From Pecten maximus (taxonomy: Eukaryota), in assembly GCF_902652985.1 (NCBI RefSeq), contig NC_047017.1, positions 20,584,001-20,648,000 on the forward strand: a stretch of DNA of 64,000 nucleotides. The letters are read 5' to 3'. This document shows, one piece after another, positions 8,701 through 62,373 of this stretch; within the stretch, counting starts at the first letter, position 1; the number at the start of each line of letters is the position of its first letter. The notes below the pieces were generated by a model. That model worked only from the letters and a program-made list of their open reading frames with translations, did not search any database and had not been told where the DNA came from. The position numbers and the translations under genes are program-made.

Positions 8701-11700
8701 CATTGGACACAACTGAATAACTACTTATATCTAATGTAAAGTACTTTTAAGATTGATTTGAAGTAATTAACATCTGGTGCAGTATGTGAGATTTTGGATT
8801 AGTATTTGTGTTGTCATACTCTATATCATCTGAAGCATTGACACAGTCAATACAGTTGTAGGTACACGTATTTGTGAAGAGATGTAGACAATGTTTACCT
8901 ATCTGATCTGTAGCTACTCTCGCCTTTGCCGGGGAGTCCCATGCTGGTAGCCATGATCATGTGAATTAAAAGTGGTTTATATTTTATATGCATATTGTAG
9001 TTTGTGTAGCTTGATCATAGACTCATCAACAAAATTATGCATTTGTTTATCTAATAATTGATCCTAAATAAGTTCATACTTGATCAATCTCATTTTAGGG
9101 AACTTGATGTTATCCATGAACAGCTGCTGGAGAGTGAGGGGAAACTGGAAGCGATAAGAATGGTATTTTTCTGTCCAGATTTTCCTATAAATAGAAAAAA
9201 AGTGTAATTTATTCTGTAAAAAGATCATAAAAATGAGATCTTTGTTACAAAATTTGAAACCACTATGAAAGTTCTCAAGAACTGACAGATACATTCAATT
9301 ATGCAAAATACCACTAATTCTATTTCTATCTCCATCTAATTTAAGGAATAATACTAAATATGTTTTGCGGTTCTTATTTGCTGAAAACTTAAAGAATTTT
9401 ATATTATGATTACTTTATGCAATCAAGTGTTAATTTGTGATATGATGTGATTTGTTAGGATCTTCGGAAATATGAGACTTCAAAAGCCAAATTGGAAGGT
9501 CAGGAGAGGGCTCTGAATGCTCAGCTGCAGAAGCAACTCAAACTAAACGGAGAACTCCGTAATAAGGGGTAAGGAAAAAGTACATGGAAAATAACTGTTG
9601 GTGTTTTTATTCCAGATCTGTAGTTACCATAAACACCATTCACAAATTACTGACAGTCAACATAGACGGCCACCAATTAAAAAGTTCAAACATATTACAA
9701 TGATCCATAAAGTGTTTTGTACTTTTAGTAATTAAGCATGTACTTTATGTAAGTTTGCTTTCAATTTAATTTCCTTTTTTTTTTTAAATATATATATTTG
9801 ATTTGACCTATTATATAAGTCCAACTATATCCATTATAGATGACCCCATGGGCCTCTTGTATTTTTGTATGAACATGGAAGAGACTTATTATATGAACAG
9901 TTGTGTATTGATGAAATCCATGTGTTTTCTGATTAAAGCAATGCAATAATCAAGGAAGATATGCAATCTCAGCAAGATTTTGAAGGTAACGAAAAACTGT
10001 TACGGAATAAATTAGAGAAGGTAAGTTTTTTACGGAATAAAGCAATAGAAAAAGTCACTTTTATCCCTAAATCTGATATGTCTTCCAATTTTGCCATTAT
10101 ATGAGGAACAAGCATACCGGGTATTGGTAAATGGTAACAATACATAACAGATGCAATTAGTTGCTTGCATTATATAGTACCTGTAGTACCCAGTAACTAG
10201 TAAGTATCAGTATATACATACTGCCCCGGTATAGATATGCTGTTCAAAAGGCAACTATATGGTCTCTTGGCTTGCACCTATAAGTTTTAATTTTTTTAAA
10301 AGCTTGTAATGATATTGTTGTGCTTCTAATATTTAAAAAAAATCAATTTGAATTTACAGATGAAGTATGAAATAGAAAGAGAAGATCATAAGAGTATGGA
10401 ACTACAGGGTCAGAAGATGGATTTACATTTAGGTAAGTTTTGTATGTTTAGTTATATTATTGATACAGTAATTCAGTATGTATAGTACAGAGACCAACAC
10501 AACCTCTGTCTGTTACCGTGTTACTGAGTAAGGTTTTACGATGGATTGGGGAGAATTAAGTAAGAGAAAACCTTACATGTTGGTGACATAGTTAATCTGA
10601 AATCATATGTTTACCTTCAGACCTTGAACAGAAGATGAAAATCAGGCAGGTGGACGCTGAACGTGTGAATGAACTAAATGATGAGTAAGTATATGACAAT
10701 TGTATAGGGGTGATTCTTGTGTATACATATACTATATATAATTCTAATGATCTAAAACATATTTTTCTAAAGTTTTTCAGACTTTGTACACGATATTTAA
10801 TCAATCACTGTAGAGACGATAATGCAACATTTTTTATTCTGAAATCTGATATGAATGCAATGTCGTTCACTAGCAGTATTTAGGGACGAATCGTCTTTGA
10901 ACTCTTCGATATACTTTCACGTGCAGGGGAATTCTAAATATCTCTGCCGTTGGTCGCATAGCGTTCTAGTGTTGAACATGATGCAGTCACGCTAGTATCC
11001 GCCTTCGGCCCACGTTTGCCGAAGGGTTCATTGTGGTTTCTCCAGTTACTAAAACATTATTCTTATTGTATTTTATTGTATTTCCAGTACTTCTTATATA
11101 TATTATGTGATTGTATTTGTAATTTTTTGTGTTTTGCTAAAGGGGCGGATTGCCTCGAAAATTTAACAAGCCTTATTGTTTACACTGTTTGAATTACTTC
11201 TTTGCCCCATATACTATATATAGATATAGCTAACATCTTCATGCATATATAAACATACATGTACAGAAGTAAAAAGTCCTACAATGTCGATATACAGAAT
11301 TACACTATATATCAATATATGTGCATAATTACAATGAACAATTTATTTATATATAGTTACACTGTATATCAATATACCTATACATGTATATACAATGTAC
11401 ATAATCACAGTGTACATCAGTTCATGTGTATATAATTATATTGTTTACCGATGTATGTAAATACAATTACATTATGTACAGTGTACATATATAATTGTGT
11501 TCCAACTTAAAATTAAATTGAATGATTACCAAAGACACTAACACAAGTATTATGTGACTGTAGTTGGCACAACATCTGATTTAAATAATGTGTATATTTA
11601 GACTGCAGACAGAGAAGCGTGCCCTGGCCTTGAAGGCTGAGGAGATGGGAAGGATGCAGGCAGAGAACGTAGAGATGCATGACCAGATAGAAAACCTAGA

Positions 11701-14700
11701 GGAGTCCCACAAGTAAGTGATATGTGTTCCCTGAGAAGTCCCACAAGTAAGTAGCATGTGTTCCCTGAATCCCACAAGTCAGTAGCATGTGTTCCCTGAG
11801 GAGTCCCACAAGTCAGTAGCATGTGTTCCCTGAATCCCTCAATTAAGTAGCATGTGTTCCCTGAGGAGTCCCACAAGTCAGTAGCATGTGTTCCCTGAAT
11901 CCCTCAATTAAGTAGCATGTGTTCCCTGAATCCCACAAGTAAGCAGCATGTGTTCCCTGAATCCCACAAGTAATTAGCATGTGTTCCCTGAATCCCACAA
12001 GTAATAAGTAGCATGTGTTCCCTAAATCCCACAAGTGAGAGGTGTGTGTTCCCTGAGGAGTCCCATTAGTAAGTTTCATGTGTTCCTTGCAGTCCCACAA
12101 GTGAGAGGTGTGTGTTCCCTGAGGAGTCCCATTAGTAAGTTTCATGTGTTCCTTGCAGTCCCACAAGTGAGAGGTGTGTGTTCCCTGAGGAGTCCCATTA
12201 GTAAGTAGCATGTGTTCCTTGCAGTCCCACATGTGAGTGGTGTGTGTTCCCTGAGGAGTCCCATTAGTAAGTAGCATGTGTTCCCTGGAGTCCCACATGT
12301 AAACACACTTTGTAAATAAATAATCATTTATTGAGGTTAATCGTTTGTTGAGGAATTAACTTGAACCTCTTTACATTTCTGACAATATTAGACTACATTG
12401 TTTACCACTTCCTCCATTATAGGGCAGTAATGGCTCAACTGAACAAGCAGATAGAGGACTACAGGGAACAGCTGGGGAAGGAGCGTAAGGAAAGGTAGGC
12501 CTGTCATTCAGTAGAAACTCTTGTTGTTTCTTCACACTTTCTGTTAATTTTTTTCAATTTGGATTAAAGAGATTACAATATTGTTACCAAGATCTCCTGC
12601 TAGAATTTTATCCAAGGTTTAGAAGGAATTACCGAATATAAAATATATTCAAATGACTTGTTAGATCAGCTGGTTTTAGACCATAGGTGCTTAACCTGTG
12701 GTAAATAATTGTTTGTCTGGTCATTATCTAAGGATTGCCTCTCTGGAATACCATAAATGGAATTATACAGCAGAGGGGGTATAGATATAGGGCATTATAG
12801 GGGTATATATAGGGCCATACATGTATATATGTAGGGCCATATGGGGGTATATGTAGGGCCATATAGGGATATATGTAGGGCAAAATAGGGAGATATATAC
12901 CCCGGTAGGGCCATATAGGGATATAGGGCAATACAGGATGAAATAGAGATATATAAAGGGCAAACAAGGGGTATTTATAGGGCCAACTAGGGATATATAT
13001 TGGGTGAAATAGAGGTCTATAAAGGGTCAAAAAGGGGCAATATAGGGTGAAATAGGGGTGCATATAGTGCCAATTAAGGGTATATATAGGGCCAATTAGG
13101 GGCAATATAGGGTCAAATAGGGGCATATATAGGGCAAAATAGGGGTGTATATATAGGGCCAAATAGGGAAAATATAGGTTGAAATAGGGGCAGTATAGGG
13201 GTGTATATATAGGGCCATATAGGGGTATATGTATGGGGTCAAATAGAGGTGTCTGAGAAACAGTACACATGGTAAGGTAAACATGAGACTTGAGTTGAAT
13301 AACAAAGAGGATTATATAGGTCACAGTTATTTTGATGATCTCGAGTAAATTAACTGCCATACAGATGGTTATACAGAATGATAAAGGCTGCGGGATTATA
13401 TAATCACTCTGCATCAACAAGTATATTTAGGATTCTGAACTATAAAGTTCATCAGTAAAATTACAAAAGTCCCACTTTTCACGATTTCTTCTGTTTTAAC
13501 AATCACATTTATTTTTCATATTTGTTTCACTCTTTGTTGTAGATAATTTGACATTTTAGTCTTATTGTATGAGGGTCATCAACTGCACAGAAACACTACT
13601 GATATACATGTACATTTCATACTTAATTTAGATGTTGCTTTCCTGATAGTTTTGGTCAAAAATTTAACAGCATATTCACAACGATTTTCCCATAAATTAA
13701 TTTTGATCTTTTTAATATAAATTTGTAATAAACTATTTTTTTAAAATCTTATCAGCTACATTTTTAACTGACCTTAATGATGTAATTTCTAATAATAAAG
13801 TTTTCATATAAATAGTCTGCGACATTTTCATGTTTCTGGGCATTTGATGAATCATCAATTTCCTCTACACCTAAATCACGAATAATATATTTTTTATTTC
13901 GTTCTTTTCTATTTTCCACTTTTCTTGCACTTAGCCCTATCCCACCACCCCCTCCTGTGGTTGAGCTCCCTCCACCCTCCCCATCCCCTCCACCTCCTCC
14001 CCCTAAGCCAAAGAAACCGAAAAAGAACAAACTGGCCAATTACTACCTACAGACTGGTAACGAACCTAATTATGGTCCCCCAGCCGCACCACCCCTTATA
14101 AACGTACCCCCACGACCCCCACTATCCTCTTCCTCTGACGACGACTACACGGACGATGAGGATGGGTAATTATAACATGTCACATGGTTTGACCCGAGTG
14201 TTATTAATATGACTAATTGGTTTCTGGATGTCTAACGAAGACTGTAATCAGATTGGTTATGTTGGGTGTGTTTACTTCTGTAGCGTGTAGCTATAAATAT
14301 ATATGCTTCAGGTTTACCACCATAATGAAATGTGTGTAAATGATATAGAGAAATTAAGGTTTAATACTGATTTTTTGCCTCATAATCAGTTTTGATTATA
14401 AATTATGGTATATGCGTGTTGTTTTAAGTTCAGACGGATCTATGACTTATCATTTAATCTGAAATTCATCTATGATTTAACCATAAACCAATGTCGTTTT
14501 TTTGAAAACCTTATATTTTTGTTGTAACAGAATACACTTATCTGGTATACTTCTAGTTTGAACAGTTAAGTGATGTGTTACCTTGTATTGGTAAATATTT
14601 GGTAAATATATAATTAAAGAGTCAAATTGAAAATGTCTGAGCAGTTGAAATATTTTTTTTTTGAATTCCCAACAAGATATGATGATTTTTTTTTTCATTC

Positions 14701-17700
14701 ACTGTTAAATTCTGTAACGATAAAAGATTTTAAGGACATCAGCACTACTACTATAAGTAGTGCCGATGTCCTTAAAATCTTTTATCGCTACAGAATTTCT
14801 ACCAAGGTGAATATTTTATGCATAAAATTCCAATACATGTATTTATGATAAATTAATTATCAAACCTTAATTCAAAATTGATCGATTATCATTTATCGGT
14901 TGAAAGGAAGGTTAATTTATCATACACTCTTTTAAACAGAACTGATCTCCAAAATTTGAGGCATGTCAAAGTCAATTAAATATATGTGTCAGTACGCCAG
15001 GCACTACATATAGTAAGTGACTAGATTCTCATATTTTACCTGTAGTTAAAACATTCAGTGAATTCAAAATAAAGCAGAGAGAACATTTTTTCTCAAATTT
15101 AAATATATTAACAGCATGTTGTATAGCTGTGTTGTATGAAAAGGTATATCGTGATAAAACTATGTGGTATTAAACTAACCATGTGTTAAATGATTGTATT
15201 CAAGAAACTAAACTTACAATGTATATTCAAGAGTTCAGACTTATATGTAATACTATATATACTATACAGTGTATTTGTATATACAAATGTATTTATTAAA
15301 TTATGTTTTTATTCAGCAAACTATATTTGTGTTCAATATTATAGATAAAAATTTTAAAACTCGTTTGATATGAAAAGAAATAAGGTTTATCATATTTGAT
15401 AAAAGTACCAAAAAGATTAACATACTATATACATGTATCAACAGATCATCACCTGTCAGAATCAATTTTGTTGTTTTTGTTTTTTTAATTTTATCTATAA
15501 AATTATTTTGAAATATACAAAATGTATTTGTAGGAAATCTTTGTTGGCTGACTGCAAGGTATTTACTTAAGATCCACATTATTGCAGAATCTACATGAGA
15601 ATTTACATTAACTAGAATTTAGTACTAGGACATTATGAGGTAAAATCACGACTAATTCTGATTGTAGGATCATGGTACAGGAACAGAAAAACAGTGTGTC
15701 AAAGAAAGTGGAGGATTTTAAAGTAGACAACCAGAAGTATCTTAGTGACATGAACAAGAAGATACAGGAGGGGAAAGTTCGGCATGTCGATCTCTCAAAT
15801 GAGGTGAGTGATTAAAATCACTAGAATGAAATCTTGTATGGAGTATTAATTGGGTAGGCTTGGTGACCTTCAGGAAATGTAACAAAATGAATGAAAGTGT
15901 CAGAAATCTAAAAAACAAAAAAAGAGTTGGAGATAAAAAAAAATTCATGTTTATTAGATTTTATATTTAGATGTATGGGGAGGGGAGAATTACACAAAAT
16001 ATGCATAGGCCATTTAGTTGCAAAAATTACCAATGCCTGTAATTTTGTGATGAACATGTATGTAGTATTTGTGGAACAGGTGAAAAAGAAAAGATCACAG
16101 AAAAAAATTCTCAATGTACACTGTATATAGATTACCCATCAAACTTACAACATCAAACCCCGCAGAAATAGGCATGTTTACAATATCCTGAAACCTGAAT
16201 GGTATGAGTTTTTTATTTGTTAACTTACTAGGGAGCCAGTCTACAACGAGATCTGAAGCTGGATGAAACTGAAATCTCAAACCTGTCTAGTGACCTCAGT
16301 GAGGTTCAAGGTCGCTATGAGACCATGTACACCAGCATGCAGGGTCGCATTGAAATGATGGAGGTATGCTGCAGGAAGATCTGTCAATTCAGTTTTTATT
16401 TGTTACTGGAAAATCTGACACTTAAGTTTGCACTTTGAGGTGCACTGTTATGAAAATTTCGATGACAATTGAAGAATTAATGATTATCTGGAATGTATTG
16501 ATCAAAATGTTCAAAACATGCAATTTGATGATAAACATGTTTAACTGTATACAAGTAGGTTTTGTTTTTGGTTCTTTCTTTTAATTTTTTTTTTTTTATT
16601 TTAAGCAAAATTTCAGCTAGAAACAAAGACATTGAATATTATATTTAAAAAAATTTCACTACATGAAATTAAGTTACCCGGTATTATTTTTAATTAAACA
16701 AATAAAATCACTTTAATCATCCTTATTTCTTTACAGTGGCAAATTGTGGAGTATGAACGTGGGATTGTGGAGAAGAAGAAGAAAATTGAAGAACAGACAC
16801 CAATATTTCATGATTTAGAAAAATTGTTTGAAGAGAGAACTAATGCTTATGATGAACTGAAAAGGGGCATAGCTAGTATGTGAAACGCTTTCTGTTCCCT
16901 ATCACACTTGTGACTGTGCAGGGCCAAAATTCATGGCAAACGTTCTCAGAGAGTTTTATTTATTGAATGTGTACTCATTGTGTGTCTTTTTCATGTTGAT
17001 TTGCTAGTTTCAATCTTTAATTGCAAAGTGAATGTTTAAAAAACACTTCTTTCAATAATTTCTCTTTTAAATATTTCTTCACTTTTACTGCTTAAAACAG
17101 GTTTCGATATTTGAGACACTTTTTTCGGATTGAATTTTGCATGTACATGTGTAATTACACAGGGACTTGACACACATTTTCAAGCTATGGTCGATATATA
17201 TATTATATATATATGGACCTTGGGTTGAACAGTCATTTCAAGTCCCTATGATATGTACTATATGATTTTCAAACCATCTGAACACAAAAAGCTAATTATT
17301 TACAGTTATGTGATTCAAGTGTTTGCTGCAAAACTCATCACAACTTTTATTTAACAAAAATACACTCATACTTAATTGTTTAATTCGAGTATTATTTCTA
17401 AATATTGGAATGTAAACACTTAAAAGATATGTTTAACAGCTTAATCAAGTTATACATCAGCATAATTTTTTTTCCAATACATGATATTCATATCATGACC
17501 TTGAAAAGGTGAAATGCTCAGTTGCTAGTTATATGTTCAAGGTCATAGACTGTAAAGGAAATAGCTAGAGCTAGACAAAATCAATGTTTGTTTGAAGTTG
17601 TGTGCCACTGTAACACAGTCTGCTAACCAATTTGTGAAGCTAATTGCTTTTGTAATTTAAAAGAAAACTCTCAGAACGAAGGAAACTTTATTTCGCAAAT

Positions 17701-20700
17701 CACCCAGAAATTTATTAAATTGTATGGGTATATTTGCACCACAGATTGGGGATGGCCAGCGCATCACATACAAGTCATGTCATTCTGTCTAATAATATAC
17801 TGCCTTACACAAAGTTACAAATTAGTACATAATTAGTTTATTGTTCCAACATTTTTCTGTATCAGGTGACTGAGTATCCTGTTGATGATTAATTTTCTAA
17901 TTTAAAAAATTAATTCTACCCTTTGAAAAAAAAAATCTAGTTATGTATTCTCCTTTTGGATTATATTGTTGTACATTTCCATGGTATTTGTTAACCTCTA
18001 AATCTTGAAGGACATTTTCTTATACAAACATAAGAATAGCATTCACCCTATAGAAATAAAATCTTATGTAAGGCATCATGTGATGTCATTTCAGCCAATA
18101 GATGAACAGAATCAGATGCCATCAACAGGATATATGTGTTAACATGTGTCACACACACTGATGTTGTGTCTAAATTAATGTAACAAGGTGTACGGGAGAA
18201 TTGATATTAGCATAATTAATCGAAAATAAATAGAGAATTAGAAAGGTCCAGTACATGTGGTTTGTTGACTATATTGTTTACAGGTCCTTTTATGAGAAAA
18301 TTTTTTCAGGCATTTTTTCATTTTGTTTTTTTATTAAAATCTAAAATTATGATAACAGGAGGTTGAAAATTGAAATCACATTCTGACAATTAAAATAACA
18401 TGTTATTTGAAAATAAGATTTATGAAATGAATGTTTTACATCAAACTGGTGAAACACAAAAATTAAGATTATTGAAATTTTATAATATTTTTGTTAAACA
18501 ATGCTGTTTAATCTTCTAGAGATGCGACAGAAAAAGAGTGCTCTAGATGAACAGATACGGAAAACCTTAGACACAAAGGACAACCTTGTCGGACCTCGGG
18601 TAAGGTTGAAAAATTTTTCACATTTGCGATTTTGCCTATCTTTATAAGTAATTAAGTTTCAGTGATCATCTCTACAAGACCTGACAAGTCATATGAATTA
18701 GTTTGGAGGAAAACTATTCATCTTATTGAAATTGAATGCAGTAAATCTGTTCTGATTTTAGTGTGACAATAATCAGCTGATTTTGAAATCAACACCAATG
18801 TAACATTTCTTTGGTAGTTAATCTGTTTATCATTCCTGGTAATATTTGAAATATTGTGAAGAAATTTTGTTTTAAATATTAAAAAATTATTTCTTGAAGG
18901 AAAAAATGAAGGAGTCTTTAAAGACCAAGCGAATAGAGTCAATAGAACAGCTGAAGAAACAAGGAGAGGAACGACAGAAAATGGAAAGGGAGATATATCA
19001 GGCTGGCTGTAAACTGAAAACGATAATCGAGGAGAACAAGAAGATTGAGGATGTGTGTATCAGACCAAATATGTTTTTATATTAATTTTTAATATTTATA
19101 TAGATCATTCGAGGGGCTTAATAATGGTTGCTTAGAGCCCAACAATTGGTACAGATCTTTTAGATAAAGATCTAACAACTGATGTAGGCTGAGTTTTCAT
19201 ATAGAGATCCAATGGTTGATACATAAGGGGAAATCGAGCTATAGTTTTACCCTGGCTTCGTCATCAGTGTCGGTTGTAGACAATTATGTTAAATTTTTTA
19301 TAAAACAGTTTTACCTGTTTGGGACCAAAATCTACAGGATGGAGTTTTTGTTTGATTTTGTAAATTAGCCTTGTTTAAACCAAACCAAGAACAGGGGTAG
19401 ATATATGCTAACAAGCAATTTACACTGTACCTGTAGCTTAACATGGGTATCCATTTATTCCCTGTATTTAATGTAAACTCAGAATTTAAATTATTTGCTG
19501 TAAGAATGTGTTAAGTTGTTGTTCTTTATATTTAGTTGACAAATGGAACTAATACTTTCCTACTATTGTGGTACTTTTATCTGATTGATCTTATAGGTCA
19601 TGACAGTTGACCATGTCAAAAAAGTTTCCGTTCTGACAGCAAATGTTTTCTTTTTTAGGGTTGTAACAAATACCAAGCTGATATGGATGAGCTTCAAAAA
19701 CAAATGAATGATGACGAACGTGTGAAAGAAAGGCTTCAGAACACACTGGATGAAGTAAAAGGTAAAGCAACAAGTTTCACAAATATCTGATATGTGAAGG
19801 GAATTTTTTTTCTTGTTTGTTTTTTTTGTTTGCTTGTTTTATTTCATAGAAAAATTATGGAAAAAGTTTGCTTTGAAAGTAAAAAAAATTTATGTGTTTT
19901 TAACATTGCAAGTTTTACAATTATCCGATATGTGAAGGAATTTTTTGTTGTTGTTGTTTTGTTTGCTTGCTTGAGTTTTTTTTCGTGAATTTTTTTTTGT
20001 TTTGAACAGTTTACGTATTTTTTTGTTACAGTGGGCCTCACAGAAAGCTGGCAAAGTGACAGGGATATGGAAGAGGTATGTACTTAATCCGGCCTACTGA
20101 ATCTATATCCAACATACCTACATTGTTATTTAGGAAGACATTCATCATATCATTGATTGATATACTTTGTACTACTGCCCGGCAGGTAGGGCGTAAGAAT
20201 TGTACCTGTTGCGGTCATAAGAGGCAAGTACATTTGGATATTTTTCTTCTTTCTAAACAATTTTCTTTTTCCTACGGTCTCCCTTGACACTGCCTCACTT
20301 TAGGCCTTTAGATGAGCATTCTTTCCCGTGTGAGGAAGGTTTTGGGTTCTGTCCCCTGGCCGAGACATACTAGAGAGTATAGAATGGTTGTCTCTTCTCT
20401 TGCTTAACACTTAGCCTGTTAAGAGTGGGACAACTTGTTCGCCCGTTGATGATGTGACCAGGTGGGGTGTCCTGCTGGGTGTCTTCAGCAGTATGATTCA
20501 GTGAGGTAGCACTATAAAGTAGGCATTAGGTCTGTGCTGTCAGAAGGAGACAAACATGAATCTACTTCAGACTCCCAAAACACACATGCATAAACTACAT
20601 ACATGCATTTCACACACTGGAGAGGCCATCCTTAGGTGACCGCAGCTGGAGATAGGACGTTTTAAAATACTAAACTAGACTAAACTTAACTCTAAAGTAT

Positions 20701-29200: not shown

Positions 29201-30079
29201 TAATAGGTGCTAGGAGTATAAATCATACATACAAAATAAAAATTGTACATCGTATATATGTGAGTGTTTTTGTATATAATGAATGTTTAGCAAATGTGTA
29301 ATTCTTCAAATATGAAGACTTGATACCTGTAGAATTGTGCTCATTGGTATATTTTGATTTTTTTAAACAATGTTATCTGAAATTATTCCATTATCCTTCC
29401 TAACAATGTAGATATTGCCAGTTTCTTAAATAACCAGCTACAGTCATGAGACCATCCTACTTTTGTCATTATTGTTTTCAATCGTATTTCAACAATTTAT
29501 AAGATGCATTTTATATTACAAAACATCAGTGTTTTTGTAATCACTTCTTCGATTTCTTGTTGACGATTCACTATCTGTAGGTATATTTCACTAAATGTTC
29601 ATCAACATATATGCTAATTAACACAGAAATTAAGTGTTTTATTAAATTTAAGTTATCAATTAGTTAGAAATCCATTAAATGGATCCAACCAATAATTGCA
29701 CATCAAAAAGAACACCAATATATTGTTTCACAAATATTAAGTGTGACACTAACATTGGACAATTGCGATGTAGAAAATGCACTTTAGTTTATAATCTATG
29801 CAGAAGAATGTGTGTCAACAGATGCATATCACTAATATACAAACTGCGTATCAAAATAAACACAGACATTTGTACCGAATAGTTAATTCTAAAAGCAGTG
29901 GTTTTACAAATAAATTTTAAGACACCTGCAGACATGTTCGTTCATCACACTTTGCCATAGCACTAATTTACTCGATGAAATGTTAACAATCTGGCAATGT
30001 CCTACAGCCATGATCTGGGACATTTGCCAGGTAACTTAACCCACATATCACATTCACATCACCACACTGCGAAGACACT

Positions 30080-33000: not shown

Positions 33001-36000
33001 AAATCATCAACATCCTGTATGAAATAATCAATCAATCAAAACAAGCCAAATATCCTTTATTTTCTTTAATACCAATTACATAACTTACACACCTGTTTAC
33101 ACAAGGCACTACACATGTATTGATGACGGAGCCTATTACATGATAGAACAGGCCAGATACCAGGTATATGTGATAACTCATTAAATACAAACATTTTCTA
33201 CATTGATTACTTTCTTTTTCTATATTATGACTGTGGAAGCAAATATAACTTGTTATGTTTTTTACCTTTTGTGACGACAGTAACACCTCATCAGCTGTTT
33301 TGGTAAGACCTTTGAAGAAACCTCCAATCTTCTCTTTTCTATTCTTCCCTCGAACACTTAACTGTTGATGGAAAACAGTTATGAGATTATGTACATGTAG
33401 ATAAGTCTGAGGCCAAATTTCTCTTGTTCAGTGTAAGACAAAGTTCTCTAGTTCAATGTGAGACAAAATTCTCTAGTTCAATGTGAAACAAAGATCTCTC
33501 AATAACTGTTCTCTCGTTCCCTGTGAGACAAAATACTCTTGTTCAGTGCAAGACAAATTTCTCTAGTTCAGCATGACACAAAGTTTTTTGCTTCTTTGTT
33601 CTCTCGATCAGTTTAAGACAAAGTTCTCTAGTTCAATGTGAGAAAAATTCTCTAGTTCAATGTGAGACAAAATTCTCTAGTTCAGTGCAAGACAAAGTTC
33701 TCTAGTTCAGTGGAAGACAAAGTTCTCTAGTTAAGTGGGAGACAAAGTTCTCTAGTTCAGTGGAAGACAAAGTTCTCTAGTTCAGTGGGAGACAAAGTTC
33801 TCTAGTTAAGTGGGAGACAAAGTTCTCTAGTTAAGTGGGAGACAAAGTTCTTTAGTTAAGTCTAGGACAAATTTACAAACATAAATCTGAGACAGAGTTC
33901 TTTAGTTTAATATTAGAAATAGTCTTCTTTTTTCAATTTCAGTCAACACTACATAAAGAGCATAAAAAATATCTGAAAACAATGAAGATTCAACCAAACT
34001 TACATCTTGGTCGTATTCTAGGAAAACTTCAAAGTTGACATCAGTTCTGAGTAAAGGGTGGCCAGCTATTCGTTGGAGAAACACTTCATGCATGGCAACT
34101 GTTTTCTTGAATGTGGCAAGATATTCACTGAAACAAAATTATGGAATACAAGTATATTATATATAGATTTGTAAATATGAATAATTATAACTACATGTAT
34201 GGTACACTTACAGTAAAATATTATAGGGTAGTCTTCATGAATCATCTAAAGCTTCAGGGCTTTTTCTGGGGGCTTTTTGGGGCCGTCATTGGGCCCCATT
34301 CCCAATTGGAATTATTTAATATTTAAGCCAAATTTCCAAAACTTTTAGTTTACTCCTGAAAAAATCTTTCTCAATTCACCAATTTTCTTCCCAAAATAAG
34401 ACAAAATGGCCCTTCTCCAAATCAGTGAGAAAAAGCCCTGAGCTTCACTCCTTAATTGGTTTTCGTAATATTAACAAATTCAAATACAGTCAAACCTGTC
34501 TATAGCGACCGCCCAAGGGGAGGCAGAAAAACGGTCACTATAGACAGGTTGCCTTTATAGACAGGTCAAAATTATTGCACCAACCAATTTACTTAAAACT
34601 GCCATATATAAATTGTCATTGAACAGGGCATTCAGATACGGAAGTATAGAGGGGACATGTGGAAAAAAAAATTTATCTCGTGCGCACGACATAAAATTTA
34701 TTTTTCCTCAATAATTATGTCGTGCGCACGAGATAGTTATGTCGAGCGCACGACTTAATAGAGATAAAAAAATGTTTCCAAATGTCCCCTCTATACTTCC
34801 GTATTCAGAAGACCAGTCAGAAGTTAAATAAATGCATAAACTTTATAAATCTGAAGGGTTTAATATTTAATGATTTGTGGACCCAAACACAAAATATAAC
34901 TCAAAATGGTCTTATGGATAATTTTTTTTTTTTAAATATTTTGTTCTGAAGTAATGCTATATGTATCTATCAAATTATCTCCCTTTCCTTCATAAATAAA
35001 GAAAAGGAATACACAATAATTAATTAATTAATTATATTTGTGTCACTACTAATTATTTTGTGTTATAGTCTTACTTCCTAAAACCAAAATATTATTTTTC
35101 TGACCCAAATTGAAATCCGGATATTTGTGTCAGTTTACGACTTTTTATTAGTATTGACTAATTAAAGATGGCGGCAGTACAAACGCTAGTAGGCCGACAG
35201 CTACGATTAAGAAAGGCATTATTGGCTTTCATGTGAGTAAATCTTGTTGACAGATATGACCAGTGTTTGTTATTGAAGTGATGTATCCTAGTTGTAATCA
35301 CAAAATTAACTGACCGTGTCAAATGAAGCCACCTGTGCACAGTTGTAATGTAATACCGACACGCATGGTGACCCGACTCCTCTCTTACCGAGGCCCAGGC
35401 CAGGGCAGCTACAGTAATTATAGGCTTACAGGTGGTAGGGGTCTTTTGTTTATATACTTAGGCCAGGGTTGTGGTGGTCCTTTGTTTGTATAATCAAGCC
35501 AGGGGTCGATGTGTCTGAATTTTCCGGGGATTTTATGAGGTATCGATGACTGCCGAGATCAGAAGATGGCTGACAGAAATCGGTCGCTATAGAAAACAAA
35601 TTACCGACCGCCGTTCCGAAATCACCGGTCGTTAGCCACATTAGACAGGTAGTCGCTATACAGAGGGTCGTTATATAGTAAAATCTCACGGGGAATCTTA
35701 AAACCGGTCGTTATAGACAGGCAGTCGTTATATACAGGGGGTCGTTAGAGCAGGTTTGACTGTAATGATATGTACCTCTTCAAGTTAAGCTTGCTTACAA
35801 TCATGCAGTTTAGCACACACCTCTTACTCAGTGAAACTTACGCCACTAACTAAGTTCTACCTATGCCACTAACTCAGTTATACTTACGCCACTTCTACCT
35901 ACACCACTAACTCATTGATACTAACACCACTAACTTAGTTCTATCTACGCCACTAACTCAGTGATACTTATGCCACAAACTTAGTTCTATCTACGTCACT

Positions 36001-39000
36001 AACTCAGTGATACTTAAGCCACTAACTTAGTTCTATCTACGCCACTAACTCATTGATACTAACACCACTAACTTAGTTCTATCTACGCCACTAACTCAGT
36101 GATACTTATGCCACTAACTTAGTTCTATCTACGCCACTAACTCAGTGATACTTATGCCACTAACTTAGTTCTACCTAAGCCTCTAACTCAGTGATACTTA
36201 CGCCACTAACATAGTTCTACCTATGCCACTAAATCATTGATACTTACGCCACTAACATAGTTCTACTTATGCCACTGAGTCAGTTATACTTACGCCACTA
36301 ACTAAGTTCTACCTAAGCCACTAACTCATTGATACTTACGCCACTAACAAACTAAGTTCTACCTACGCCACTAACATAGCTCTACCTACACCACTAACTC
36401 ACTGATACTTACGCCACTTACTTAGTTCTACCTAAGCCACTAACTCAGTGATACTTATGCCTCTAACTAATTCTACCTAAGCCTCTAACTCAGCGATACT
36501 TACGCCTCTAACTCTTGTTTCATCTTGGTGAACTCTTCCTTGGTCATTGTGCCTTCCCCTTCTCCCAGTCGCTGTAACTTTTCCCGTGATGCATCAAAGT
36601 CTGGGCGTGGTGGAGCGGGAGGTATCTGAATGATACAAATTTAATGCACAAAATTTGATAACAAAATTTTTATGAAATCAGAAATACACACAAAAAGATC
36701 TGATATTCATGAGTTTTCATAAAATACAAATATATACATGATTACAAATGAGCAAAATCAACATGAAATGAATTTTTTTTCCAATTTCTTTAAAAATGAA
36801 CTTACGACAACACCAGCATATTCTTCATTCTCCACATAGCGATCGTGTAGCCAGATAAACTCCTCATGCTGCCGTACCACAGAAAACTCTCCCTCTTTAA
36901 ACTTTTGCAAAGAAGTCTAGAAAACAATGATATCTATATGAAATAATTGGCAAGTTTTACTTATCAATAATTACATATACATCAGGCTCAGTTTCATTAA
37001 TGTTTCTTATCTTAACTAAATCAAAATTTCCCTATTGGAAAAAAATATTGAATTCAAAGAAAGATTTTAGTTTTGGAACTTTCCTTTAATTCTGTAGAGC
37101 TATTTCTTAAAGGAAATCTTAAGTTGAGGGATTTACTGAAGTTATTAGTTTTGTGAATATTGAAGAAACATTTGTCATTAAAGCTTAATAAGGCCCAATA
37201 TTACCATTAACACCTGTGATTATGATCATTTACAATTATAAACTTAAGATAAAGATACTACATCAGTGATACACTTACCTTTGTGTGAACAGTAAACTTG
37301 ACTTTGTCTCTCTCGCTTAAAGCATCAGAAATGTCAACTTGTAGGGATGTATCTGTTGACAAATCTACCGTCTCAGATCTTGGCTGAAGGATAAAACAAC
37401 ATCACATTAACAGCGACAGCTTCTGGAAGGACGCCAGCTGTTTACTTCCGAACACACTGGTACCAGTACCGATTTGTACACCTTATATTCAGTTGGTGAG
37501 AACTATATTGGGGAAAATGTCTTCGGGGCATTCAGCAATCAAGAGAATGGTTGTAGGATAACTTGGCCAAAACAGGTTTTCTTTGTTTTTACTTAATCAA
37601 TTCTGTATCTTTAATCATATATATGGTTGTAGCTAAGTACATTTTTCTTACTGAATTTAAATTTACTTTGTTTGATAAAAATGCCAATTGCTGTACATAA
37701 CTTCCTTTTGTTTAGAGCTTCTACATAAGTTATTATGTATTCAATTCATGTTTCTATCAACGGGATATCTCCGACCATATACAGATACAGTTGGTGTCTT
37801 TGCCATTGGAAACTAGGAGTTGAGAATGACTCGGGTCAGTGCAGATAGAAATTCTCAAGGCCATGCCAATTTATTTTTTTTTCTAATTTTATACAATGCA
37901 ACAAGCACAAATATATAGCCTACAAGTATTTCTAAGAGAAAAAAAACATACCCTTTCCATCCCATAGTAATGTTTTGGCAAATCAACAATCAATTTGTGA
38001 TTTGATTGTTGATTTGCCAAAACATTTCCATGGGATGGAAAGGCTTAAGAATAAGTTGTTTTTTCTCTTAGAAATACTAGTAGACTAATTTGTGCTTGTT
38101 GCATTGTATAATATAAGATTTCAAAAAAAAAAAAAAAAAAAAAAAAAAATTCGGCATGGCCTATCTACACTGACCCAAGTAAGCATAGATCCTAGAAATT
38201 GATAAATACCTTAATACTGTATTAAATAGAAGTGCCAAATAACTATCTACATATTTGTATTAATATATAATTATAACTTCACCAAAGTGTACAAAAAATG
38301 AATTTAAGAAAATGTGACGGACATATAGAAAATTAGAAATCAATAGAAAATTACTGTCACTATATTGAAGATCAGGGGGCAAAATTTTTGTTGAAGGAGG
38401 AAGTGTTTTATGCAACAGGACTATTCTGTCACTTATCTGTGACCGATATATGTATGTAAATATACATTAACAAATAAGGCAATTAATGCCTGCCTGGGAT
38501 CTTTTCTTCATCTCCTTGTTTACCAATAGGAATATTTGGTTACTTGAGAGCAATATCACATAGGAAGATACGCGTGTGCACATGTACACCCTATGTTGTT
38601 AATACCGGTACTGTGTATTAGGTCTACCTAAAATCTATGTCCCCTCCCCCTTTTCCAAATGGAAGACATTCAATAAATTGTTTATTTTATATTACTCGTG
38701 GGCAAACATGATGGATATAGCGTTTACTCTTATGCGATCATCGTATGTGTTTACGTTAGAGATGTTGAATTGTGTCGTGGCTCGTGGCTCTAATGTGGAC
38801 AATGCTGAGTTGACTCATCGACGAACACTGAACAGGTAAAATCTGATGAAGTCACCAACTGTTTTGGAACTTTAAAGAATGTCTAACATGCGATATTATG
38901 ATACTTACCTTGTTTTCCTGGTCCCCTTCCAAAAGGTCGGGCCCGTCATCCAAACCGTCCTGGAAAAAATGGAAATAGATGTATTAAAACATAAATCAGG

Positions 39001-39072: not shown

Positions 39073-39080
39073 TCACGTGA
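39073..39080. promoter_or_regulatory. Palindromic E-box TCACGTGA (CLEAR/USF-type) immediately upstream of the SNX6 ATG
   Basis: The 12-bp palindrome aaTCACGTGAtt lies about 13 nt from the start codon. Confidence 0.4.
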
Positions 39081-41094
39081 TTATAAAATTCGGAACGCAT
39101 CGGGAGTTTTTATATTACTCATACATTTCTAAAATATATGACTTACTTCCCTTTGACTGTGTAGTTAATTTAGAATATTTTTCTTTTTCTTTTCTTTGTG
39201 TGTTAGGCCTGGCTTTCAAAATTAACACAGTGATTGGCATATCGATGATAATTGTTCTCATAGGCCTACTAGATCTTAATGCGCATATTGATGAATTTTA
39301 AAGACACCCAATGCATTTCAATCATTTCAATTTCCAAAAAAAAAAAAAAAAAAACGAATAAAACCTATTTTTCGGTATTTTACATGAAATTCTGTGTTCG
39401 TGTCTTAGAGTTCTGTGTTCAGAAATCTTTATTTCATTAAAATATACTGCGTTCAAATTAATTTCCATAAAGTCGATACTACATGTATAAGCTTAGCTGA
39501 TATAGAGTACTGTATATATATCACATATGTTGATATTCTTCATTAGATCCGTCTGCACGTGCATGTGTACGCCGCCTACCTGTATTGGTGCTGTTGTGTA
39601 CTAATTTGATTAAACAAAGATATCTAAAGACCGCGTACATGTCCTGGATCACAATGCGTAAATGGAATCCCAAACTAATCGAATTCGAGAAATAAACTAA
39701 ACGTTTATAGTTTCAGGAGAAACATGAAAGCTGAATAGTAAGATATAGTTCTGCCAATTCAACTTTGAGCCTGATTGAGAAAACAAGATATAGGATTGTG
39801 TGACAGGGAAACTAAATTTTTAATTTTGACAGCTGAAGCTTTTAATTGCTATTTCTTGCGAAGGATTATTTGATTTAAACATATCTTATTGCGTTGGTGC
39901 AGCAAACGGATTGTACGGTCACAAGTTATTTCAACATTACACATGCCTTCTCCTGAATAAGTTTTACATAAATTGATAGATTGCATATTCAAATAATATA
40001 GTGATAATACAACAGATATATGACGACGAGTTAACGTCACATTAACTAAACCTTTGGATTTATTATACTACATACTTTCATTTTATAGGAATAGTACATT
40101 TATATTCATAACGATGACATCCAGAATCAATACATTAATATTTGACAGTAGGGTAAGTTTTTGCATATCTTAACGAGTAAATATGAAAAAATGATAGGCA
40201 TTATCACAAGTACATGTATATATCCATAGTTCTCAGGTCAGATGTACTCTAAAAATTAAAAATGGTAATGATTTTATATATATACTTCACAGGCGCGGAT
40301 CCAGGATTTTCGAAAGGGGGGGGGGGGGGGGGGGGGGGGCTGAATCGCTAGTTCTTCAGCTTTGTATGCATTGTATATTTAGTTTTCGGTCTGGCGGTCT
40401 GGAATAAAAGGCCAATGTTCAGACTTGATGTAGGTTTCCTTGGTCCTCAGTAGGATTACAAGAAGGCCAACCGAAAACAGCCATCTTGTATTTTGACATT
40501 TAAAGTTTGTTATCGCTATTTTTTGAGAAGTCATTCAAAGATATCTCTGAATCAAAGTACTGAAAGTACTGAAGACACAAACGAAAACAAATTATTTTAA
40601 CTGCTTTTGTTTAGTGGGGACATGGTCAACTTTGTATGGAACATCACCAATACCTGATTAGGACTAGGACAAAATATTGGCAAGAAAAGAAATTCATATC
40701 TTCTTTTGATTGGAAGTGCGTCTTGGCAGCTAATTGTCAGAATAGGTACTCAGGTAATCTTATTTGACATCTTCAATGGGTTAATGTATACGTAGTTGTA
40801 GATGTAATATGAAGGTCCTAGATTACCTGTAAAATTAATGAGGCCTTTCTTTTCAAACTTTTGAGGATCCCATGCCTATAAGCGCTTCACAAATTATCAT
40901 TATCATTAGCCATTGAAAAGATATTTATACATTTGATGTAGCGCCCCATCTAGCTACCAGCTTTTAGATCAGAGCTCAGGTTAAAAACACTTGTGTGATT
41001 GTTTTAGGATTTTATCGTGTGTGTGAGCCCTGGTTTGAATTATGTTATGTCAAGGTTTTGAATGATATTTTGTGGCAGATTGTTTCATCTCTTC

Positions 41095-41674
41095 AGTACC
41101 TTCTGTAAAATAGCGATAACAAACTTCAATTGTCAAAATACAATATGGCTGCCTGTCGACCATGTTGTTTTCCGATTAGTCGCAAAATGCAATATCCATA
41201 ACTAGGCACCGAGGGGAACCTACATATAAAATTTTAGAAAGATCCCTTCAGCACTTTCTGAGAAATAGCGATAACAAACTTCAATTGTCTAAATCCAAGA
41301 TGGCTGCCTGTCGGCCATATTGTTTTCCGATTGGTCTCAAAATGCAATATACATAACTAATGTAAGCACCAAGAGGAACCTACATATGAAATTTGAGAAA
41401 GATCAATTCAGTGCTTTCTGAGAAATAGCAATAACAAACTTCAATTGTCAAAACCTAAGATGGCTGCCTGTCGGCCATATTGTTTTCCGATAAGTCTCAA
41501 AATGCAATATGCATAACTAGAAATCAAGAGAAACCTATATATGAAATTTTAGAAGATCCCTTCAGTACTTTGAGAAATAGCGATAACAAGAATTGTTTAC
41601 GGATGGAGGGACGGACGGACCACAGACGCAGGGCGATTTGAATAGCCCACCATCTGATGATGGTGGGTTAAAAA
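41095..41674 (+). mobile_element. Non-autonomous Helentron/HINE (pearl-like) element: about 156-bp core repeats, microsatellite and 3' hairpin
   Basis: Slightly more than three tandem cores (gaaatagcgataacaaacttcaattgtc..aagatggctgcc..), then (ggac)n, then hairpin gcccaccatc-tgat-gatggtgggt and an A-run. Inverted fragments of the core occur at about 40470-40570 and 44400-44660. Confidence 0.75.
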
Positions 41675-44600: not shown

Positions 44601-45199
44601 TCCCTTGTTATACTTTGAAACAAAATGACCAACAGACAGCCATCTTGGATGTAAACACTTAAACTTTCAAAGGAAGCGAAAGAACAGATAGAGAATAGAC
44701 CAGGTCATACAGACTTACGAGCGATTGACAACTGAAGCGAATGCCATGCGTCTTGAGTCAGAGTCGGCTTCGTCTTGGTTAAAATTTAATCTATGAGAAC
44801 CTATTCTACAAACTGTCGTTATCAGTATTCCTGTACTATCATTCGTCGTCAGATTATGAAAATGTTTAAAAAGATCCGACGACGAACGATCTATTCTTTT
44901 CTTAGTCGCTATGATCTTTGCTGATTAACATTTGGTTGTCAGGTTCGTTAAACTGTCGTCAAAGGTATGTTAAATATTGCCAAAATGTCGCCCATTAGTC
45001 TTTATAGTAGTCTCATTCCATTCACCAATCGGTCGTAATTTCGAAACTGCTTTTTTTCATACGTCAGCAAACCGTACGTGGTATATAAGTTTGCTTTAGA
45101 CTTGTTTTTTTCCAGTTTTGGTTCAAAGCTGATATTTGGTTGCATGGTTAATCTTTAGACATAATTTACTATGAAAGTGATTCTGTTGCAGCATGTTCT

Positions 45200-45455
45200 C
45201 CGCGACATGACCGAAGTTGTTGTGGTTCAACGCTCCATATCCGTGGTTAGTTTTGTTTCCTGGGATGAAACGGACCGGTCTATGCTGAAGTGGTTGTGTC
45301 CGTGGGAAAGGCACTTGACCCCTATCGATCTTGATGGCATATGACGGACCTTCTGTATGCTGTTCAATGAGGAAGCCACCAGCTACTACAAGGAAACCCC
45401 TCCTCATTATGATCCTGGCTGTTCAAGGGGCGATAAACCCAACCGACAAACACAA
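45200..45455 (+). mobile_element. Degenerate SINE with CORE-like domain
   Basis: gttgtgtccgtgggaaaggcacttgacc resembles the CORE motif. The tail tatgatcctggctgttcaaggggcgataaacc resembles the tail of the other SINEs here. Confidence 0.5.
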
Positions 45456-45771
45456 TTTGGTATGACTGCTGGTTAGTCTGAATAATTAAGATTTTCTATC
45501 TGCTATATACTGCTGGGGGCTGATGAGTCTCCCGACTTTCTCGGACTAGAATCTGACGAACTTTTTAAAATCTAATATGGTGTTGTTGTGTGCATAAATG
45601 ACATTTGTTGATCCTAATCATACTTAGGAATAAATTAACAAAGACTGACTAAATATGAAAACATTTAATGGACAAAACAGGTACATGTACATAATAATAG
45701 GCCTATTCAGAGTTGATAACGGATCCGTGAGTGACTCAGACGCGCGACATACATTATGTTAATGTGTTGGG

Positions 45772-48700
45772 CTAGCTTACTATCATCATCGGGAACACAA
45801 AACAGAACATATAATTGCCGTTTTCGTCTTTTAAGTCCCACTGTACATCTAAACTGATCTGTAACAAGAAAAATACAATATTAAAAAATGAAATGGCATT
45901 ATTGTAATTATCCAATGGTACAAGTGTAAAAAATAGAGAGTATACGGTTACAAACCGCAAGGCCGTAATAATCAATCTGGCGTAAATTTCCCTTTACCCT
46001 AATGGTAGGATGTTTGCCTTGAGAGCGAAAGGTCGCTAGTTCGAAGCCCGGCACGGGCAGGGTATTTTTCATTATCCTTATCTTGATTTTAAAAAAAATG
46101 TTGAATAACAATTCGGTGTATTTGAACATTCCTTGGATGTATAAAACATTTAGACATTTATGAAAGTTTGCATTCTGATTTATCAGAGTTCCTTCGTCCG
46201 TCAACTTATAATTGTACATTAGGTATATCGAGGGACAAGGCGGGTGATTGTGCTTGACAGCCGATGGCGGCCGTGAATGGAAATAATTAGGCAAGATTAA
46301 CCAGCAGACAAATCCGTGGTCATCGAATGAAAGAAGTACATAAATCTAGAAGTAGTTAAAATATAATCATGGCGGCCGATCGAGATACTTTTCTTGATTT
46401 AAACATTTTAATTCAACAAATATATTACATGGGTACTTGAAAAGGGAGAAGTTAAGCACGTGGCGACGTACACATTTAAAGTGACTTGTAAGTACTATAA
46501 TTACCAATGGGTATGTTGGAATGACAGCGAAAAACTGGACATAGGAGTACTTTGTTGAGCTTGTGAGTGGACATTGCAGACCGGAATCTTTACATCCGTT
46601 TGAATTGGGCATGGCGAACTTGACCGGTATTCCCATCACTATCCCGTAAATCTCGGACGTCACCTGTGCCGAGTTGGTTGCTATGACGAGACAAGCAAAC
46701 AATATCAGAATAACTGTTTGTTGTTTTTCTTAGATACGAAATATGCACAATTTTAGAAATAAGGAAGTGGTGGTCTAGATAGTGTTAGAAAAGTCTAGCT
46801 GAGGTAAGAATTATGGTCTAGTAAGGATCGGAACAGTCTAGTGGGGTAAGAATGGTCTAGTTAGGATCGGAACAGTCTAGTGGGGTTAGAATGGTCTAGT
46901 TAGGATAGGAACAGTCTAGTGGGGGGTTAGAATGGTCTAGTTAGGATCGGAACAGTCTAGTGGGGTAAGAATGGTCTAGTTAGGATCGGAACAGTCTAGT
47001 GGGGTAAGAATGGTCTAGTTAGGATCGGAACAGTCTAGTGGGGTAAGAATGGTCTAGTTAGGATCGGAACAGTCTAGTGGGGTTAGAATGGTCTAGTTAG
47101 GATAGGAACAGTCTAGTGGGGGGTTAGAATGGTCTAGTTAGGATCGGAACAGTCTAGTGGGGGTTAGAATGGTCTAGTTAGGATCGGAAGTCTGGTGGGG
47201 TAAGAATGGTCTAGTTAGGATAGGAACAGTCTATTGGGGTTAGAATGGTCTAGTTAGGATCGGAACAGTCTAGAGGGGGTTGGAATGGTCTAGTTAGGAT
47301 AGGAACAGTCTAGTGGGGGTTAGAATGGTCTAGTTAGGATCGGAACAGTCTAGTGGGGGTTGGAATGGTCTAGTTAGGATAGGAACAGTCTAGTGGGGTA
47401 AGAATGGCCTAGTTAGGATAGGAACAGTCTAGTGGGGTAAGAATGGCCTAGTTAGGTTAGGAACAGTCTAGTGGGATTAGAATGGTCTAGTTAGGATAGG
47501 AACAGTCTGTTGGGGGTTGGAATGGTCTAGTTAGGATCGGAACAGTCTAGTGGGGTTAGGATGGTCTAGTTAGGATAGGAACAGTCTAGTGGGGTTAGAA
47601 TGGTCTAGTTAGGATAGGAACAGTCTAGTGGGGGTTAGAATGGTCTAGTTAGGATCGGAACAGTCTAATGGGGGTTAGGATGGTCTAGTTAGGATCGGAA
47701 CAGTCTAGTGGGGTTAGGATGGTCTAGTTAGGATAGGAACAGTCTAGTGGGGGTTGGAATGGTCTAGTTTGATAGGAACAGTCTAGTGAGGGTTATAATG
47801 GTCTAGTTAGGATCGGAACAGTCTTGTGGGGGTTATAATGGTCTAGTTAGGATCGGAACAGTCTAGTGGGGTTAGAATGGTCTAGTTAGGATAGGAACAG
47901 TCTGGTGGGGGTTAGAATGGTCTAGTTAGGATAGGAACAGTCTAGTGGGGGTTGGAATGGTCTATTATAGGATAGGAACAGTCTAGTGGGGGTTGGAATG
48001 GTCTAGTTAGGATCGGAACTGTCTAGTGGGGGTTGGAATGGTCTAGTTAGGATAGGAACAGTCTAGTGGGGGTTGGAATGGTCTATTATAGGATAGGAAC
48101 AGTCTAGTGGGGGTTGGAATGGTCTAGTTAGGATCGGAACAGTCTATTGATGAGTTAGAATGGTCTAGTTAGGATAGGAACAGTCTAGTGGGGGTTGGAA
48201 TGGTCTAGTTAGGATCGGAACAGTCTATTGATGGGTTAGAATGGTCTAGTTAGGATCGGAACAGTCTAGTGGGGGTTGGAATGGTCTAGTTAGGATCGGA
48301 ACAGTCTAGTGGGGTTGGAATGGTCTATTATAGGATAGGAACAGTCTAGTGGGGGTTGGAATGGTCTAGTTAGGATCGGAACAGTCTAGTGGGGGTTATG
48401 ATGGTCTAGTTAGGATAGGAACAGTCTAGTGGGGTTAGAATGGTCTAGTTAGGATAGGAACAGTCTAGTGGGGGTTGGAATGGTCTAGTTAGGATCGGAA
48501 CAGTCTAGTGGGGGTTGGAATGGTCTAGTTAGGATCGGAACAGTCTAGTGGGGTTGGAATGGTCTATTATAGGATAGGAACAGTCTAGTGGGGGTTGGAA
48601 TGGTCTAGTTAGGATCGGAACAGTCTAGTGGGGGTTTATAATGGTTTAGTTAGGATAGGAACAGTCTAGTGGGGGTTATGATGGTCTAGTTAGGATCGGA

Positions 48701-60364: not shown

Positions 60365-62373
60365 TCAGCCAACGACAGCATGAGAAGGGTCAAGTATAGA
60401 TGCTGGCATTACGAAGCAGGCCAAGTCGTTTCCCTGCTCGTCTATTAACTCCCATTTCACCAGAAGTGATATCTTAAATGTAAAATAAAAAACATATTCA
60501 TTGGAATAATAATGTTTCTTTTATACACTACCTGTTACAATCTTGCCATAAAATATGTATATATGATAGATTATGATAGACTATTGCATGATTATAACAA
60601 TTAACAATGACATGAACAACTTAAGTATATATTAGTATCATTGTTTAAGAACAGCTGGAATGAAATGTATGTGGCGGATATGATATAAACATACTTCTGG
60701 GTGTATTTGTATTTCAGAAGTGTAATTTGGGTGGTGGATACTATATATACTTACCTGTGGGTATATTTGAAGTACAGGGATGCAGTTTGTGTTAGTGATA
60801 TAATATATACAGGGATGTAGTTTGTGTTAGTGATATGATATATACAGGGATGTAGTTTGTGTTAGTGATATGATATATACAGGGATGCAGTTTGTGTTAG
60901 TGATATGATATATACAGGGATGTAGTTTGTGTTAGTGATATGATATATACTTACCTCTGGGTATATTTGTAGTACAGGGATGTAGTTTGTGTTAGTGATA
61001 TGATATATACTTACCTCTGGGTATATTTGTAGTACAGGGATGTAGTTTGTGTTAGTGATATGATATATACTTACCTCTGGGTATATTTGTAGTACAGGGA
61101 TGTAGTTTGTGTTAGTGATATGATATATACTTACCTCTGGGTATATTTGTAGTACTGGGATGTAGTTTGTGTTAGTGATATGATATATACTTACCTCTGG
61201 GTATATTTGTAGTACAGGGATGTAGTTTGTGTTAGTGATATGATATATACTTACCTCTGGGTATATTTGTAGTACAGGCATGTAGTTTGTGTTAGTGATA
61301 TGATATATACTTACCTCTGGGTATATTTGTAGTACAGGGATGTAGTTTGTGTTAGTGATATACTATATACTTACCTCTGGGTATATTTGTAGTACAGGGA
61401 TGTAGTTTGTGTTAGTGATATATATATACAGGGATGTAGTTTGTGTTAGTGATATGATATATACAGGGATGTAGTTTGTGTTAGTGATATGATATATACT
61501 TACCTCTGGGTATATTTGTAGTACAGGGATGTAGTTTGTGTTAGTGATATGATATATACAGGGATGTAGTTTGTGTTAGTGATATAATATATACTTACCT
61601 CTGGGTATATTTGTAGTACTGGGATGTAGCTTGTGTTAGTGATATGATATATACAGGGATGTAGTTTGTGTTAGTGACATAATATATACTTACCTCTGGG
61701 TATATTTGTAGTACTGGGATGTAGCTTGTGTTAGTGATATGATATATACAGGGATGTAGTTTGTGTTAGTGATATGATGTATACTTACCTCTACGTATAT
61801 TTGTAGTACAGGGATGTAGCTTGTGTTAGTGATATAATATATACAGGGATGTAGTTTGTGTTAGTGATATGATATATACAGGGATGTAGTTTGTGTTAGT
61901 GATATGATATATACAGGGATGAAGTTTGTGTTAGTGATATGATATATATTTACCTCTACGTATATTTGTAGTACAGGGATGTAGTTTGTGTTAGTGATAT
62001 GATATATATTTACCTCTACGTATATTTGTAGTACAGGGATGTAGTTTGTGTTAGTGATATGATATATACAGGGATGCAGATTGTGTTAGTGATATGATAT
62101 ATACAGGGATGTAGTTTGTGTTAGTGATATGATATATACTTACCTCTGGGTATATTTGTAGTACTGGGATGTAGTTTGTGTTAGTGAAATACTATATACT
62201 TACCTCTGGGTATATTTGTAGTACAGGGATGTAGTTTGTATATACATTATTTACTCCGGGGCTAATTGGACAGTGCACATTGTTGCTTGTGCAGCTGTGC
62301 GTCGACATGAATGGCACAGGAATTCCGGCAATGATTCCATGAACTGACGTTGTCACTTTATTTGTGTGTACAT
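60365..62373 (-). CDS. NPC2: NPC2-like / ML-domain protein B, last two exons (5' exons lie beyond the window)
   Basis: Exons 62204-62373 (..KVTTSVHGIIAGIPVPF..CTSNNVHCPISPGVNNVYTNYIPVLQIYPE) and 60365-60472 (ISLLVKWELIDEQGNDLACFVMPASILDPSHAVVG*). Intron phases match NPC2-A. AATAAA at 60239-60244 (minus strand). Confidence 0.9.
60670..62240 (-). repeat. Tandem array of 60-bp (donor-containing) and 35-bp (donor-less) units derived from the NPC2-B exon end plus splice donor
   Basis: Unit ACAAACTACATCCCTGTACTACAAATATACCCAGAG|GTAAGTATATATCATATCACTAAC. About 16 donor copies lie downstream of the true donor at 62203. Confidence 0.95.

Follow-up and report, generated by a model that had tools for sequence, protein, structure and literature searches.

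Three introns in a 64-kb stretch of contig NC_047017.1 from the scallop Pecten maximus (the window, meaning the whole stretch of DNA that was analysed) begin with tandem repeats whose unit joins the end of the preceding exon to its own 5' splice site, and a fourth intron, reaching beyond the window end, is filled by an array of the same kind. The arrays belong to a coiled-coil gene (A1), to an SNX5/6-like gene (A2) and to NPC2-B, one of two NPC2-like genes (A3 and A4). They are four new members of an already known type of repeat and most likely not batteries of decoy donors that have evolved for a function. We consider it probable that these splice-junction ('mirage'-type) minisatellites were amplified by slippage or unequal exchange and are tolerated through the use of the first donor, most likely as inert by-products. 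In the whole genome, periodic strong-donor motifs outnumbered composition-matched controls by a factor of 6-9, and this donor bias of the genome is real.

Repeats were detected with Tandem Repeats Finder, which gave 47 rows for the window, and gene models were queried one exon at a time, not as joined models. Three arrays, at 11703-12302 (period 34/65), 35826-36514 (23/46) and 60677-62239 (60/35), start inside an exon when they are read on the gene strand, and their unit comprises the exon end, the GTAAGT donor and the start of the intron (Table 1). Tandem Repeats Finder and the unit tables showed that the copies of the arrays overall are arranged head-to-tail, with periods of 23-65 nucleotides (nt) and 9-43 copies. 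A 20-mer across the true junction, counted in the following intron with <=4 mismatches, recurred 6, 13 and 17 times for the three arrays, and the splice-site sequence is thus repeated in the intron; the same count was 0 at nine other mapped donors and 0 at ten mapped acceptors. These measurements bear out a sequence-only reading of the window, which had described three introns starting with arrays made of 11-36 nt of exon and 12-24 nt of intron (measured as ~14 + ~20, ~11 + 12 and 36 + 24 nt), with units that are unrelated in sequence between the three genes. Its count of three cases in 64 kb was correct for these arrays and incomplete for the window, in which A4 is a fourth donor-derived array. 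It had also noticed no array built from an acceptor, and none was found in the window, to which this statement applies.

The same reading had pointed to an in-frame stop within four codons past each true donor, and such a stop is indeed present: read-through meets a TAA at once in A1 and A2, and a stop at the fourth codon in NPC2-B (A3). A special meaning of these stops was rejected because they are expected from a GTAAGT donor followed by AT-rich introns. A special role of GTAAGT itself was also rejected, as 11 of the 17 donors mapped in the 84-kb locus made up of the window and its two flanks have this sequence, which is therefore an ordinary motif. Likewise, a transposon-borne or dispersed-satellite origin was discarded, the units being unrelated to each other and derived from local exon sequence.

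In A1, the GT was kept at the homologous place in 15/17 copies, with the donor region being the most variable part of the unit. In A2, the GT was kept in ~18/29 copies and the full true donor sequence in only ~7. A3 makes up ~88% of NPC2-B intron 3 and contains 14 copies with the exact true donor context together with 14 donor-less units; only its last one or two units are degenerate. The donor-less 35-nt unit of A3 corresponds to the 60-nt unit minus 25 nt bearing the exon end and the donor, and this form has itself been amplified 14 times. The A4 unit aligned to the exon 2 junction of NPC2-B with a score above those of all 2000 shuffles. This array, whose part in the window was also delimited more narrowly as 62658-64000, runs 1085 bases past the window end, up to the exon 2 donor, and occupies nearly all of intron 2; diverged copies at both of its ends still carry GTAAGT.

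The evolution of the copies was then examined. Conservation of the nine donor columns did not exceed that of the other columns, these nine being average or more variable, and they ranked 6 of 31, 45 of 60 and 2 of 39 among all 9-column windows (a low rank means more variable). In A1 and A2, the donor is weakened or lost in many copies. The identity of a copy to the junction unit showed no significant relation to its position along the array (Spearman rho 0.11, -0.19 and 0.20), and in A4 it is the exon-proximal copies that are the most diverged. The earlier claim that distal copies are the most diverged therefore fails.

Donor use was investigated in RNA with Logan contigs from four runs, each of a different study, which were placed on 60000-62600. 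The sole joint in all four runs was 60472/62204, a GT..AG junction on the minus strand which connects NPC2-B exon 3, at its exon-proximal donor, to the last exon. A loose end of the RNA at 62373 corresponds to the true end of exon 2, so the true donor of exon 2 is also in use. The later donor copies of NPC2-B were not joined to anything in these contigs. The authentic donors of introns 2 and 3 are thus used in the contigs of four studies, and normal splicing is kept. Short contigs lying inside A3, and one across the unspliced acceptor, resemble pre-mRNA and show the array in data from other animals.

Table 1 Coordinates of the donor-junction arrays and of the associated exons in the window.
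Feature	Coordinates	Strand	Description
Coiled-coil gene, coding exon	11602..11712	+	36-codon open frame between AG acceptor and GTAAGT donor; true donor GT 11713-11714
Donor-junction minisatellite A1	11699..12302	+	17 additional copies (31-34 nt) with ~14 nt from the exon end and ~20 nt from the intron
SNX5/6-like exon (ends ...ELEA)	36504..36625	-	True donor GT 36503-36502; assigned by homology
Donor-junction minisatellite A2	35826..36514	-	23-nt unit, ~29 copies, with a 46-nt higher-order repeat; ~11 nt from the exon end and 12 nt from the intron
NPC2-A exons	51950-51861, 46672-46508, 45858-45778	-	Paralogue of NPC2-B in the window
NPC2-B exon 3 (ML domain)	62204..62373	-	Pfam ML E 4e-9; covered by RNA contigs of four runs; true donor GT 62203-62202
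Donor-junction minisatellite A3	60677..62239	-	60-nt units (36 nt of exon end and 24 nt of intron) mixed with donor-less 35-nt units
NPC2-B last exon, coding part	60365..60472	-	Acceptor AG 60474-60473; weak ML-domain match; stop codon and 3' untranslated region follow
Donor-junction array A4, part in the window	62485..64000	-	39-nt unit, ~60 copies; derived from NPC2-B exon 2 junction

The identity of the host genes was then considered. The exon at A2 showed 88-90% identity to invertebrate SNX5/6 homologues, with the following exon matching a PX domain, and ten exons of this gene were mapped on the minus strand. The exon at A1 is read as coding from its open frame and splice signals and has only generic coiled-coil features. 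Its name, given as CCDC175 from sequence alone, was not confirmed: a Pfam search of the exon gave no match and its neighbours in the Atlas were merely generic coiled coils. The two NPC2-like (ML-domain) genes are tandem paralogues on the minus strand, located at 45778-51950 (NPC2-A) and 60365-64000 (NPC2-B), the latter continuing beyond the window.

The introns are older than the arrays, which are later additions, because NPC2-A has the same intron positions as NPC2-B and no junction arrays, and because open reading frame (ORF) fragments of other animals terminate at the SNX boundary (...ELEA) or just after it. Intron gain by tandem duplication was rejected on these grounds, the NPC2 intron positions being common to NPC2-A and the SNX boundary common to other animals. 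These fragments are numerous short ORFs from the genomic contigs of those animals and, although read-through artefacts of gene callers, they mark a conserved intron position. Intron 2 of NPC2-A is filled by another repeat, a G-rich minisatellite of 4.8 kb with a 20/40-nt unit and poly-G runs (46771-51582), which starts ~270 nt after the donor and is derived from neither junction. A junction origin was rejected in the same way for 33414-33861, 52599-52765, 12781-13252 and L002:1603-2138 (the prefix L denotes a further piece of sequence), these being plain intronic or intergenic arrays. Together with L003:4745-6937, these four served as minisatellite comparators without junction sequence.

To what extent this pattern extends to the 918-Mb genome was assessed by motif counts and by a random sample. 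Three periodic GGTAAGT at a spacing of 10-40 gave 26,555 matches, compared with 3,466-4,736 for four composition-matched controls, including the reversed motif (4,736), GGAAAGT, in which only the GT is destroyed (4,704), and GGAAAGT reversed (3,466); these counts are matches and not arrays, so that long arrays weigh heavily, and they score the motif alone. For the full consensus AGGTAAGT at a spacing of 41-70, 9,498 matches were found against 1,039 for its control. The acceptor motif TTTCAGG showed no excess, with 2,420 periodic matches versus 4,574 for its reverse. A single GGTAAGT outside arrays was no commoner than the controls, these 7-mers occurring 26-46 times per 224 kb, and the units of the first donor-motif arrays listed genome-wide were all unrelated. 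The earlier suggestion of a lineage-wide, donor-biased pattern is supported by these counts.

The random sample consisted of twenty 10-kb pieces (L004-L023, 200 kb), in which arrays of >=100 nt were counted. It contained 47 such arrays covering 22% of the bases, which makes this genome unusually rich in minisatellites. A donor weight matrix applied to these arrays showed a weak excess at 4 bits (8 observed versus 2.9 expected) and none at 5-6 bits, and a simple acceptor weight matrix scored even true acceptors poorly. An open-frame proxy for an exon beside an array gave no signal over the null in the 200 kb, the proxy being too noisy, and by eye no array with a donor-like motif in this sample had a clear adjoining exon.

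Some further repeats were observed in the sample and in the window. In one sampled piece, a 41-nt array with a strong donor motif on the minus strand (L010:9363-9998) stops ~35 nt short of a probable acceptor and exon on the same strand; this could be one more intron filled by a donor-derived array, the 5' end of which is off the sampled piece. A 160-nt repeat of the window (41087-41589, 3.2 copies) has a core of ~35 nt in common with an array of 466-nt period on another chromosome (L020:2874-5277), and the two probably belong to a dispersed, perhaps transposon-borne, satellite family. A satellite of ~145-158 nt with a GC-rich, palindrome-like core was present in 4/20 of the random 10-kb samples (L004, L011, L020 and L022), on four chromosomes.

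The arrays probably formed as follows. A short segment that covers the end of the exon together with the 5' splice site would have been duplicated in tandem, and would then have been amplified into the intron by slippage or unequal exchange, through the same turnover that places about a fifth of the genome in minisatellites. Old introns have been swollen by these arrays. The arrays probably persist because splicing keeps using the exon-proximal donor, which leaves the further copies as mere intron; the use of a later copy would introduce an early stop codon.

Several points weigh against this account of tolerated by-products. The RNA evidence consists of assembled contigs and concerns NPC2-B only; such contigs can demonstrate presence but not absence and drop rare isoforms, and nonsense-mediated decay (NMD) would hide the use of decoy donors. 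Tolerance alone does not account for the 6-9-fold excess of the donor motif, which is equally available outside arrays. In the 84-kb locus, 4/14 arrays span a donor, compared with 0.1-0.3 expected under uniform seeding (17 to ~40 donors and 40-nt units), in a window that was chosen because it shows the pattern.

The last two points would be expected if 5' splice sites were hot spots at which tandem duplications arise or grow, in a manner coupled to transcription or to splice-site recognition, for example through polymerase pausing, R-loops or fork stalling. The arrays themselves would still be neutral, and this proposal is compatible with their being splice-junction minisatellites tolerated as by-products. 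The contrast with a control in which only the GT is destroyed and the unrelated units of the first listed arrays argue for it, as does the presence of arrays at 4/17 mapped donors of the locus versus 0/16 acceptors (hypergeometric 0.06). The donor also lies near the middle of the unit in A1-A3, where the exon share amounts to 0.41, 0.48 and 0.60 of the period; a wider scatter would be expected from random duplications across the junction, although three arrays are too few for a test. However, long arrays weigh heavily in the genome-wide counts, and the random 200 kb had no donor-motif array beside a clear exon. We regard such a hot spot as a tentative possibility and, with the same reserve, the wider proposal that the scallop 5' splice site is a genuine hot spot of tandem duplication coupled to transcription or to spliceosome assembly on the DNA template. 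If this were true, donor-junction minisatellites would be a major and directional driver of intron growth in the scallop, not a random subset of its repeats.

A mere coincidence in a genome filled with minisatellites, with no real enrichment at donors, has to be considered, as ~22% of random sequence lies in arrays, of which there would be hundreds of thousands, enough for thousands to fall across junctions by chance; moreover, the window was picked among 784 annotated windows for showing the pattern. Against this, the motif excess was measured in the whole genome and is independent of the choice of the window, and four donor arrays in the 84-kb locus have a Poisson probability of <=2e-4 before allowing for this selection, which makes chance alone unlikely. 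Even less credible is that the arrays are U1-binding decoy donors selected to tune splicing, NMD or premature polyadenylation, as the sequence-only reading had suggested. In U1 telescripting and with intronic decoy 5' splice sites, many U1-complementary motifs lie in the 5' part of introns. The scallop arrays resemble this situation in sequence only: they lie at the starts of introns, the place at which bound U1 would act, and next to the A3 copies with the exact donor context, ~47/50 of the A4 units have a usable GT. Decoys under selection are at odds with the first donor alone being seen in the RNA of four studies, with a donor region that, in the two older arrays, varies more than most of the unit and has lost the GT in many copies, and with donor columns that are not additionally conserved. 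The donor-less 35-nt units were amplified as readily as the donor-bearing ones, and the paralogue NPC2-A does without such arrays. The tuning role is thus not supported and we judge it very improbable. Finally, assemblies are error-prone at tandem repeats, and an artefact could have inflated or invented the arrays; this can be set aside almost completely, because the copies differ from each other in structured ways and the RNA contigs of independent studies include parts of the array as well as the unspliced end of the intron and differ little from the assembly.

Taken individually, the splice-junction minisatellites described here are further examples of a described type of repeat and are probably without function. 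Collectively, the donor arrays may reveal a mutational process that is linked to splice sites and makes introns longer. The scallop genome also offers thousands of natural experiments on how the spliceosome chooses the first among identical donors, and arrays of this type can lead gene prediction and isoform calling astray.

Human genes are known to contain minisatellites that start with a monomer lying across the boundary of exon and intron, namely the 37-bp variable number tandem repeat in intron 7 (IVS7) of F7 and those of IFI6/6-16, CBS IVS13, LMNB2 and PDGF, where identical pseudo-donors follow the authentic donor and only the site furthest upstream, or one of the first one to three sites, is used (PMC1557585). 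NPC2-B likewise uses its exon-proximal donor. The exonic part of the unit is only 4 nt in F7, versus 11-36 nt in the scallop, and the choice of the donor by oriented scanning is a result obtained on F7. The human examples are single occurrences in a genome that has few arrays of this kind, whereas the scallop has four in 84 kb and many more genome-wide. In intron gain as described by the Rogers model and in human introns from tandem arrays (cited in PMC3087553), tandem duplications bearing splice signals also alter the size or structure of introns; the scallop arrays differ in that they enlarge pre-existing introns and created none.

No report of exon-intron-junction minisatellites in molluscs was found in the literature, and close relatives of the scallop arrays are the 'mirages' of amphioxus, described in Adh3, troponin C, the globins BflGb6 and BflGb9, and PGBD5, whose units span exon and intron and leave normal splicing intact (PMC3087553, PMC3902484). 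Their unit lengths vary, they show concerted evolution and degenerate edge copies, and it was suspected that they characterise the amphioxus genome in general (PMC3087553, PMC3902484). Somatic or allelic length instability was shown for amphioxus Adh3, whereas the scallop arrays are known from the assembly and from contigs. In both lineages, splice signals recur within the intron while normal splicing persists. The amphioxus mirages involve both 5' and 3' boundaries with no stated bias, while the genome of the scallop, a bivalve, has a measurable excess at donors.

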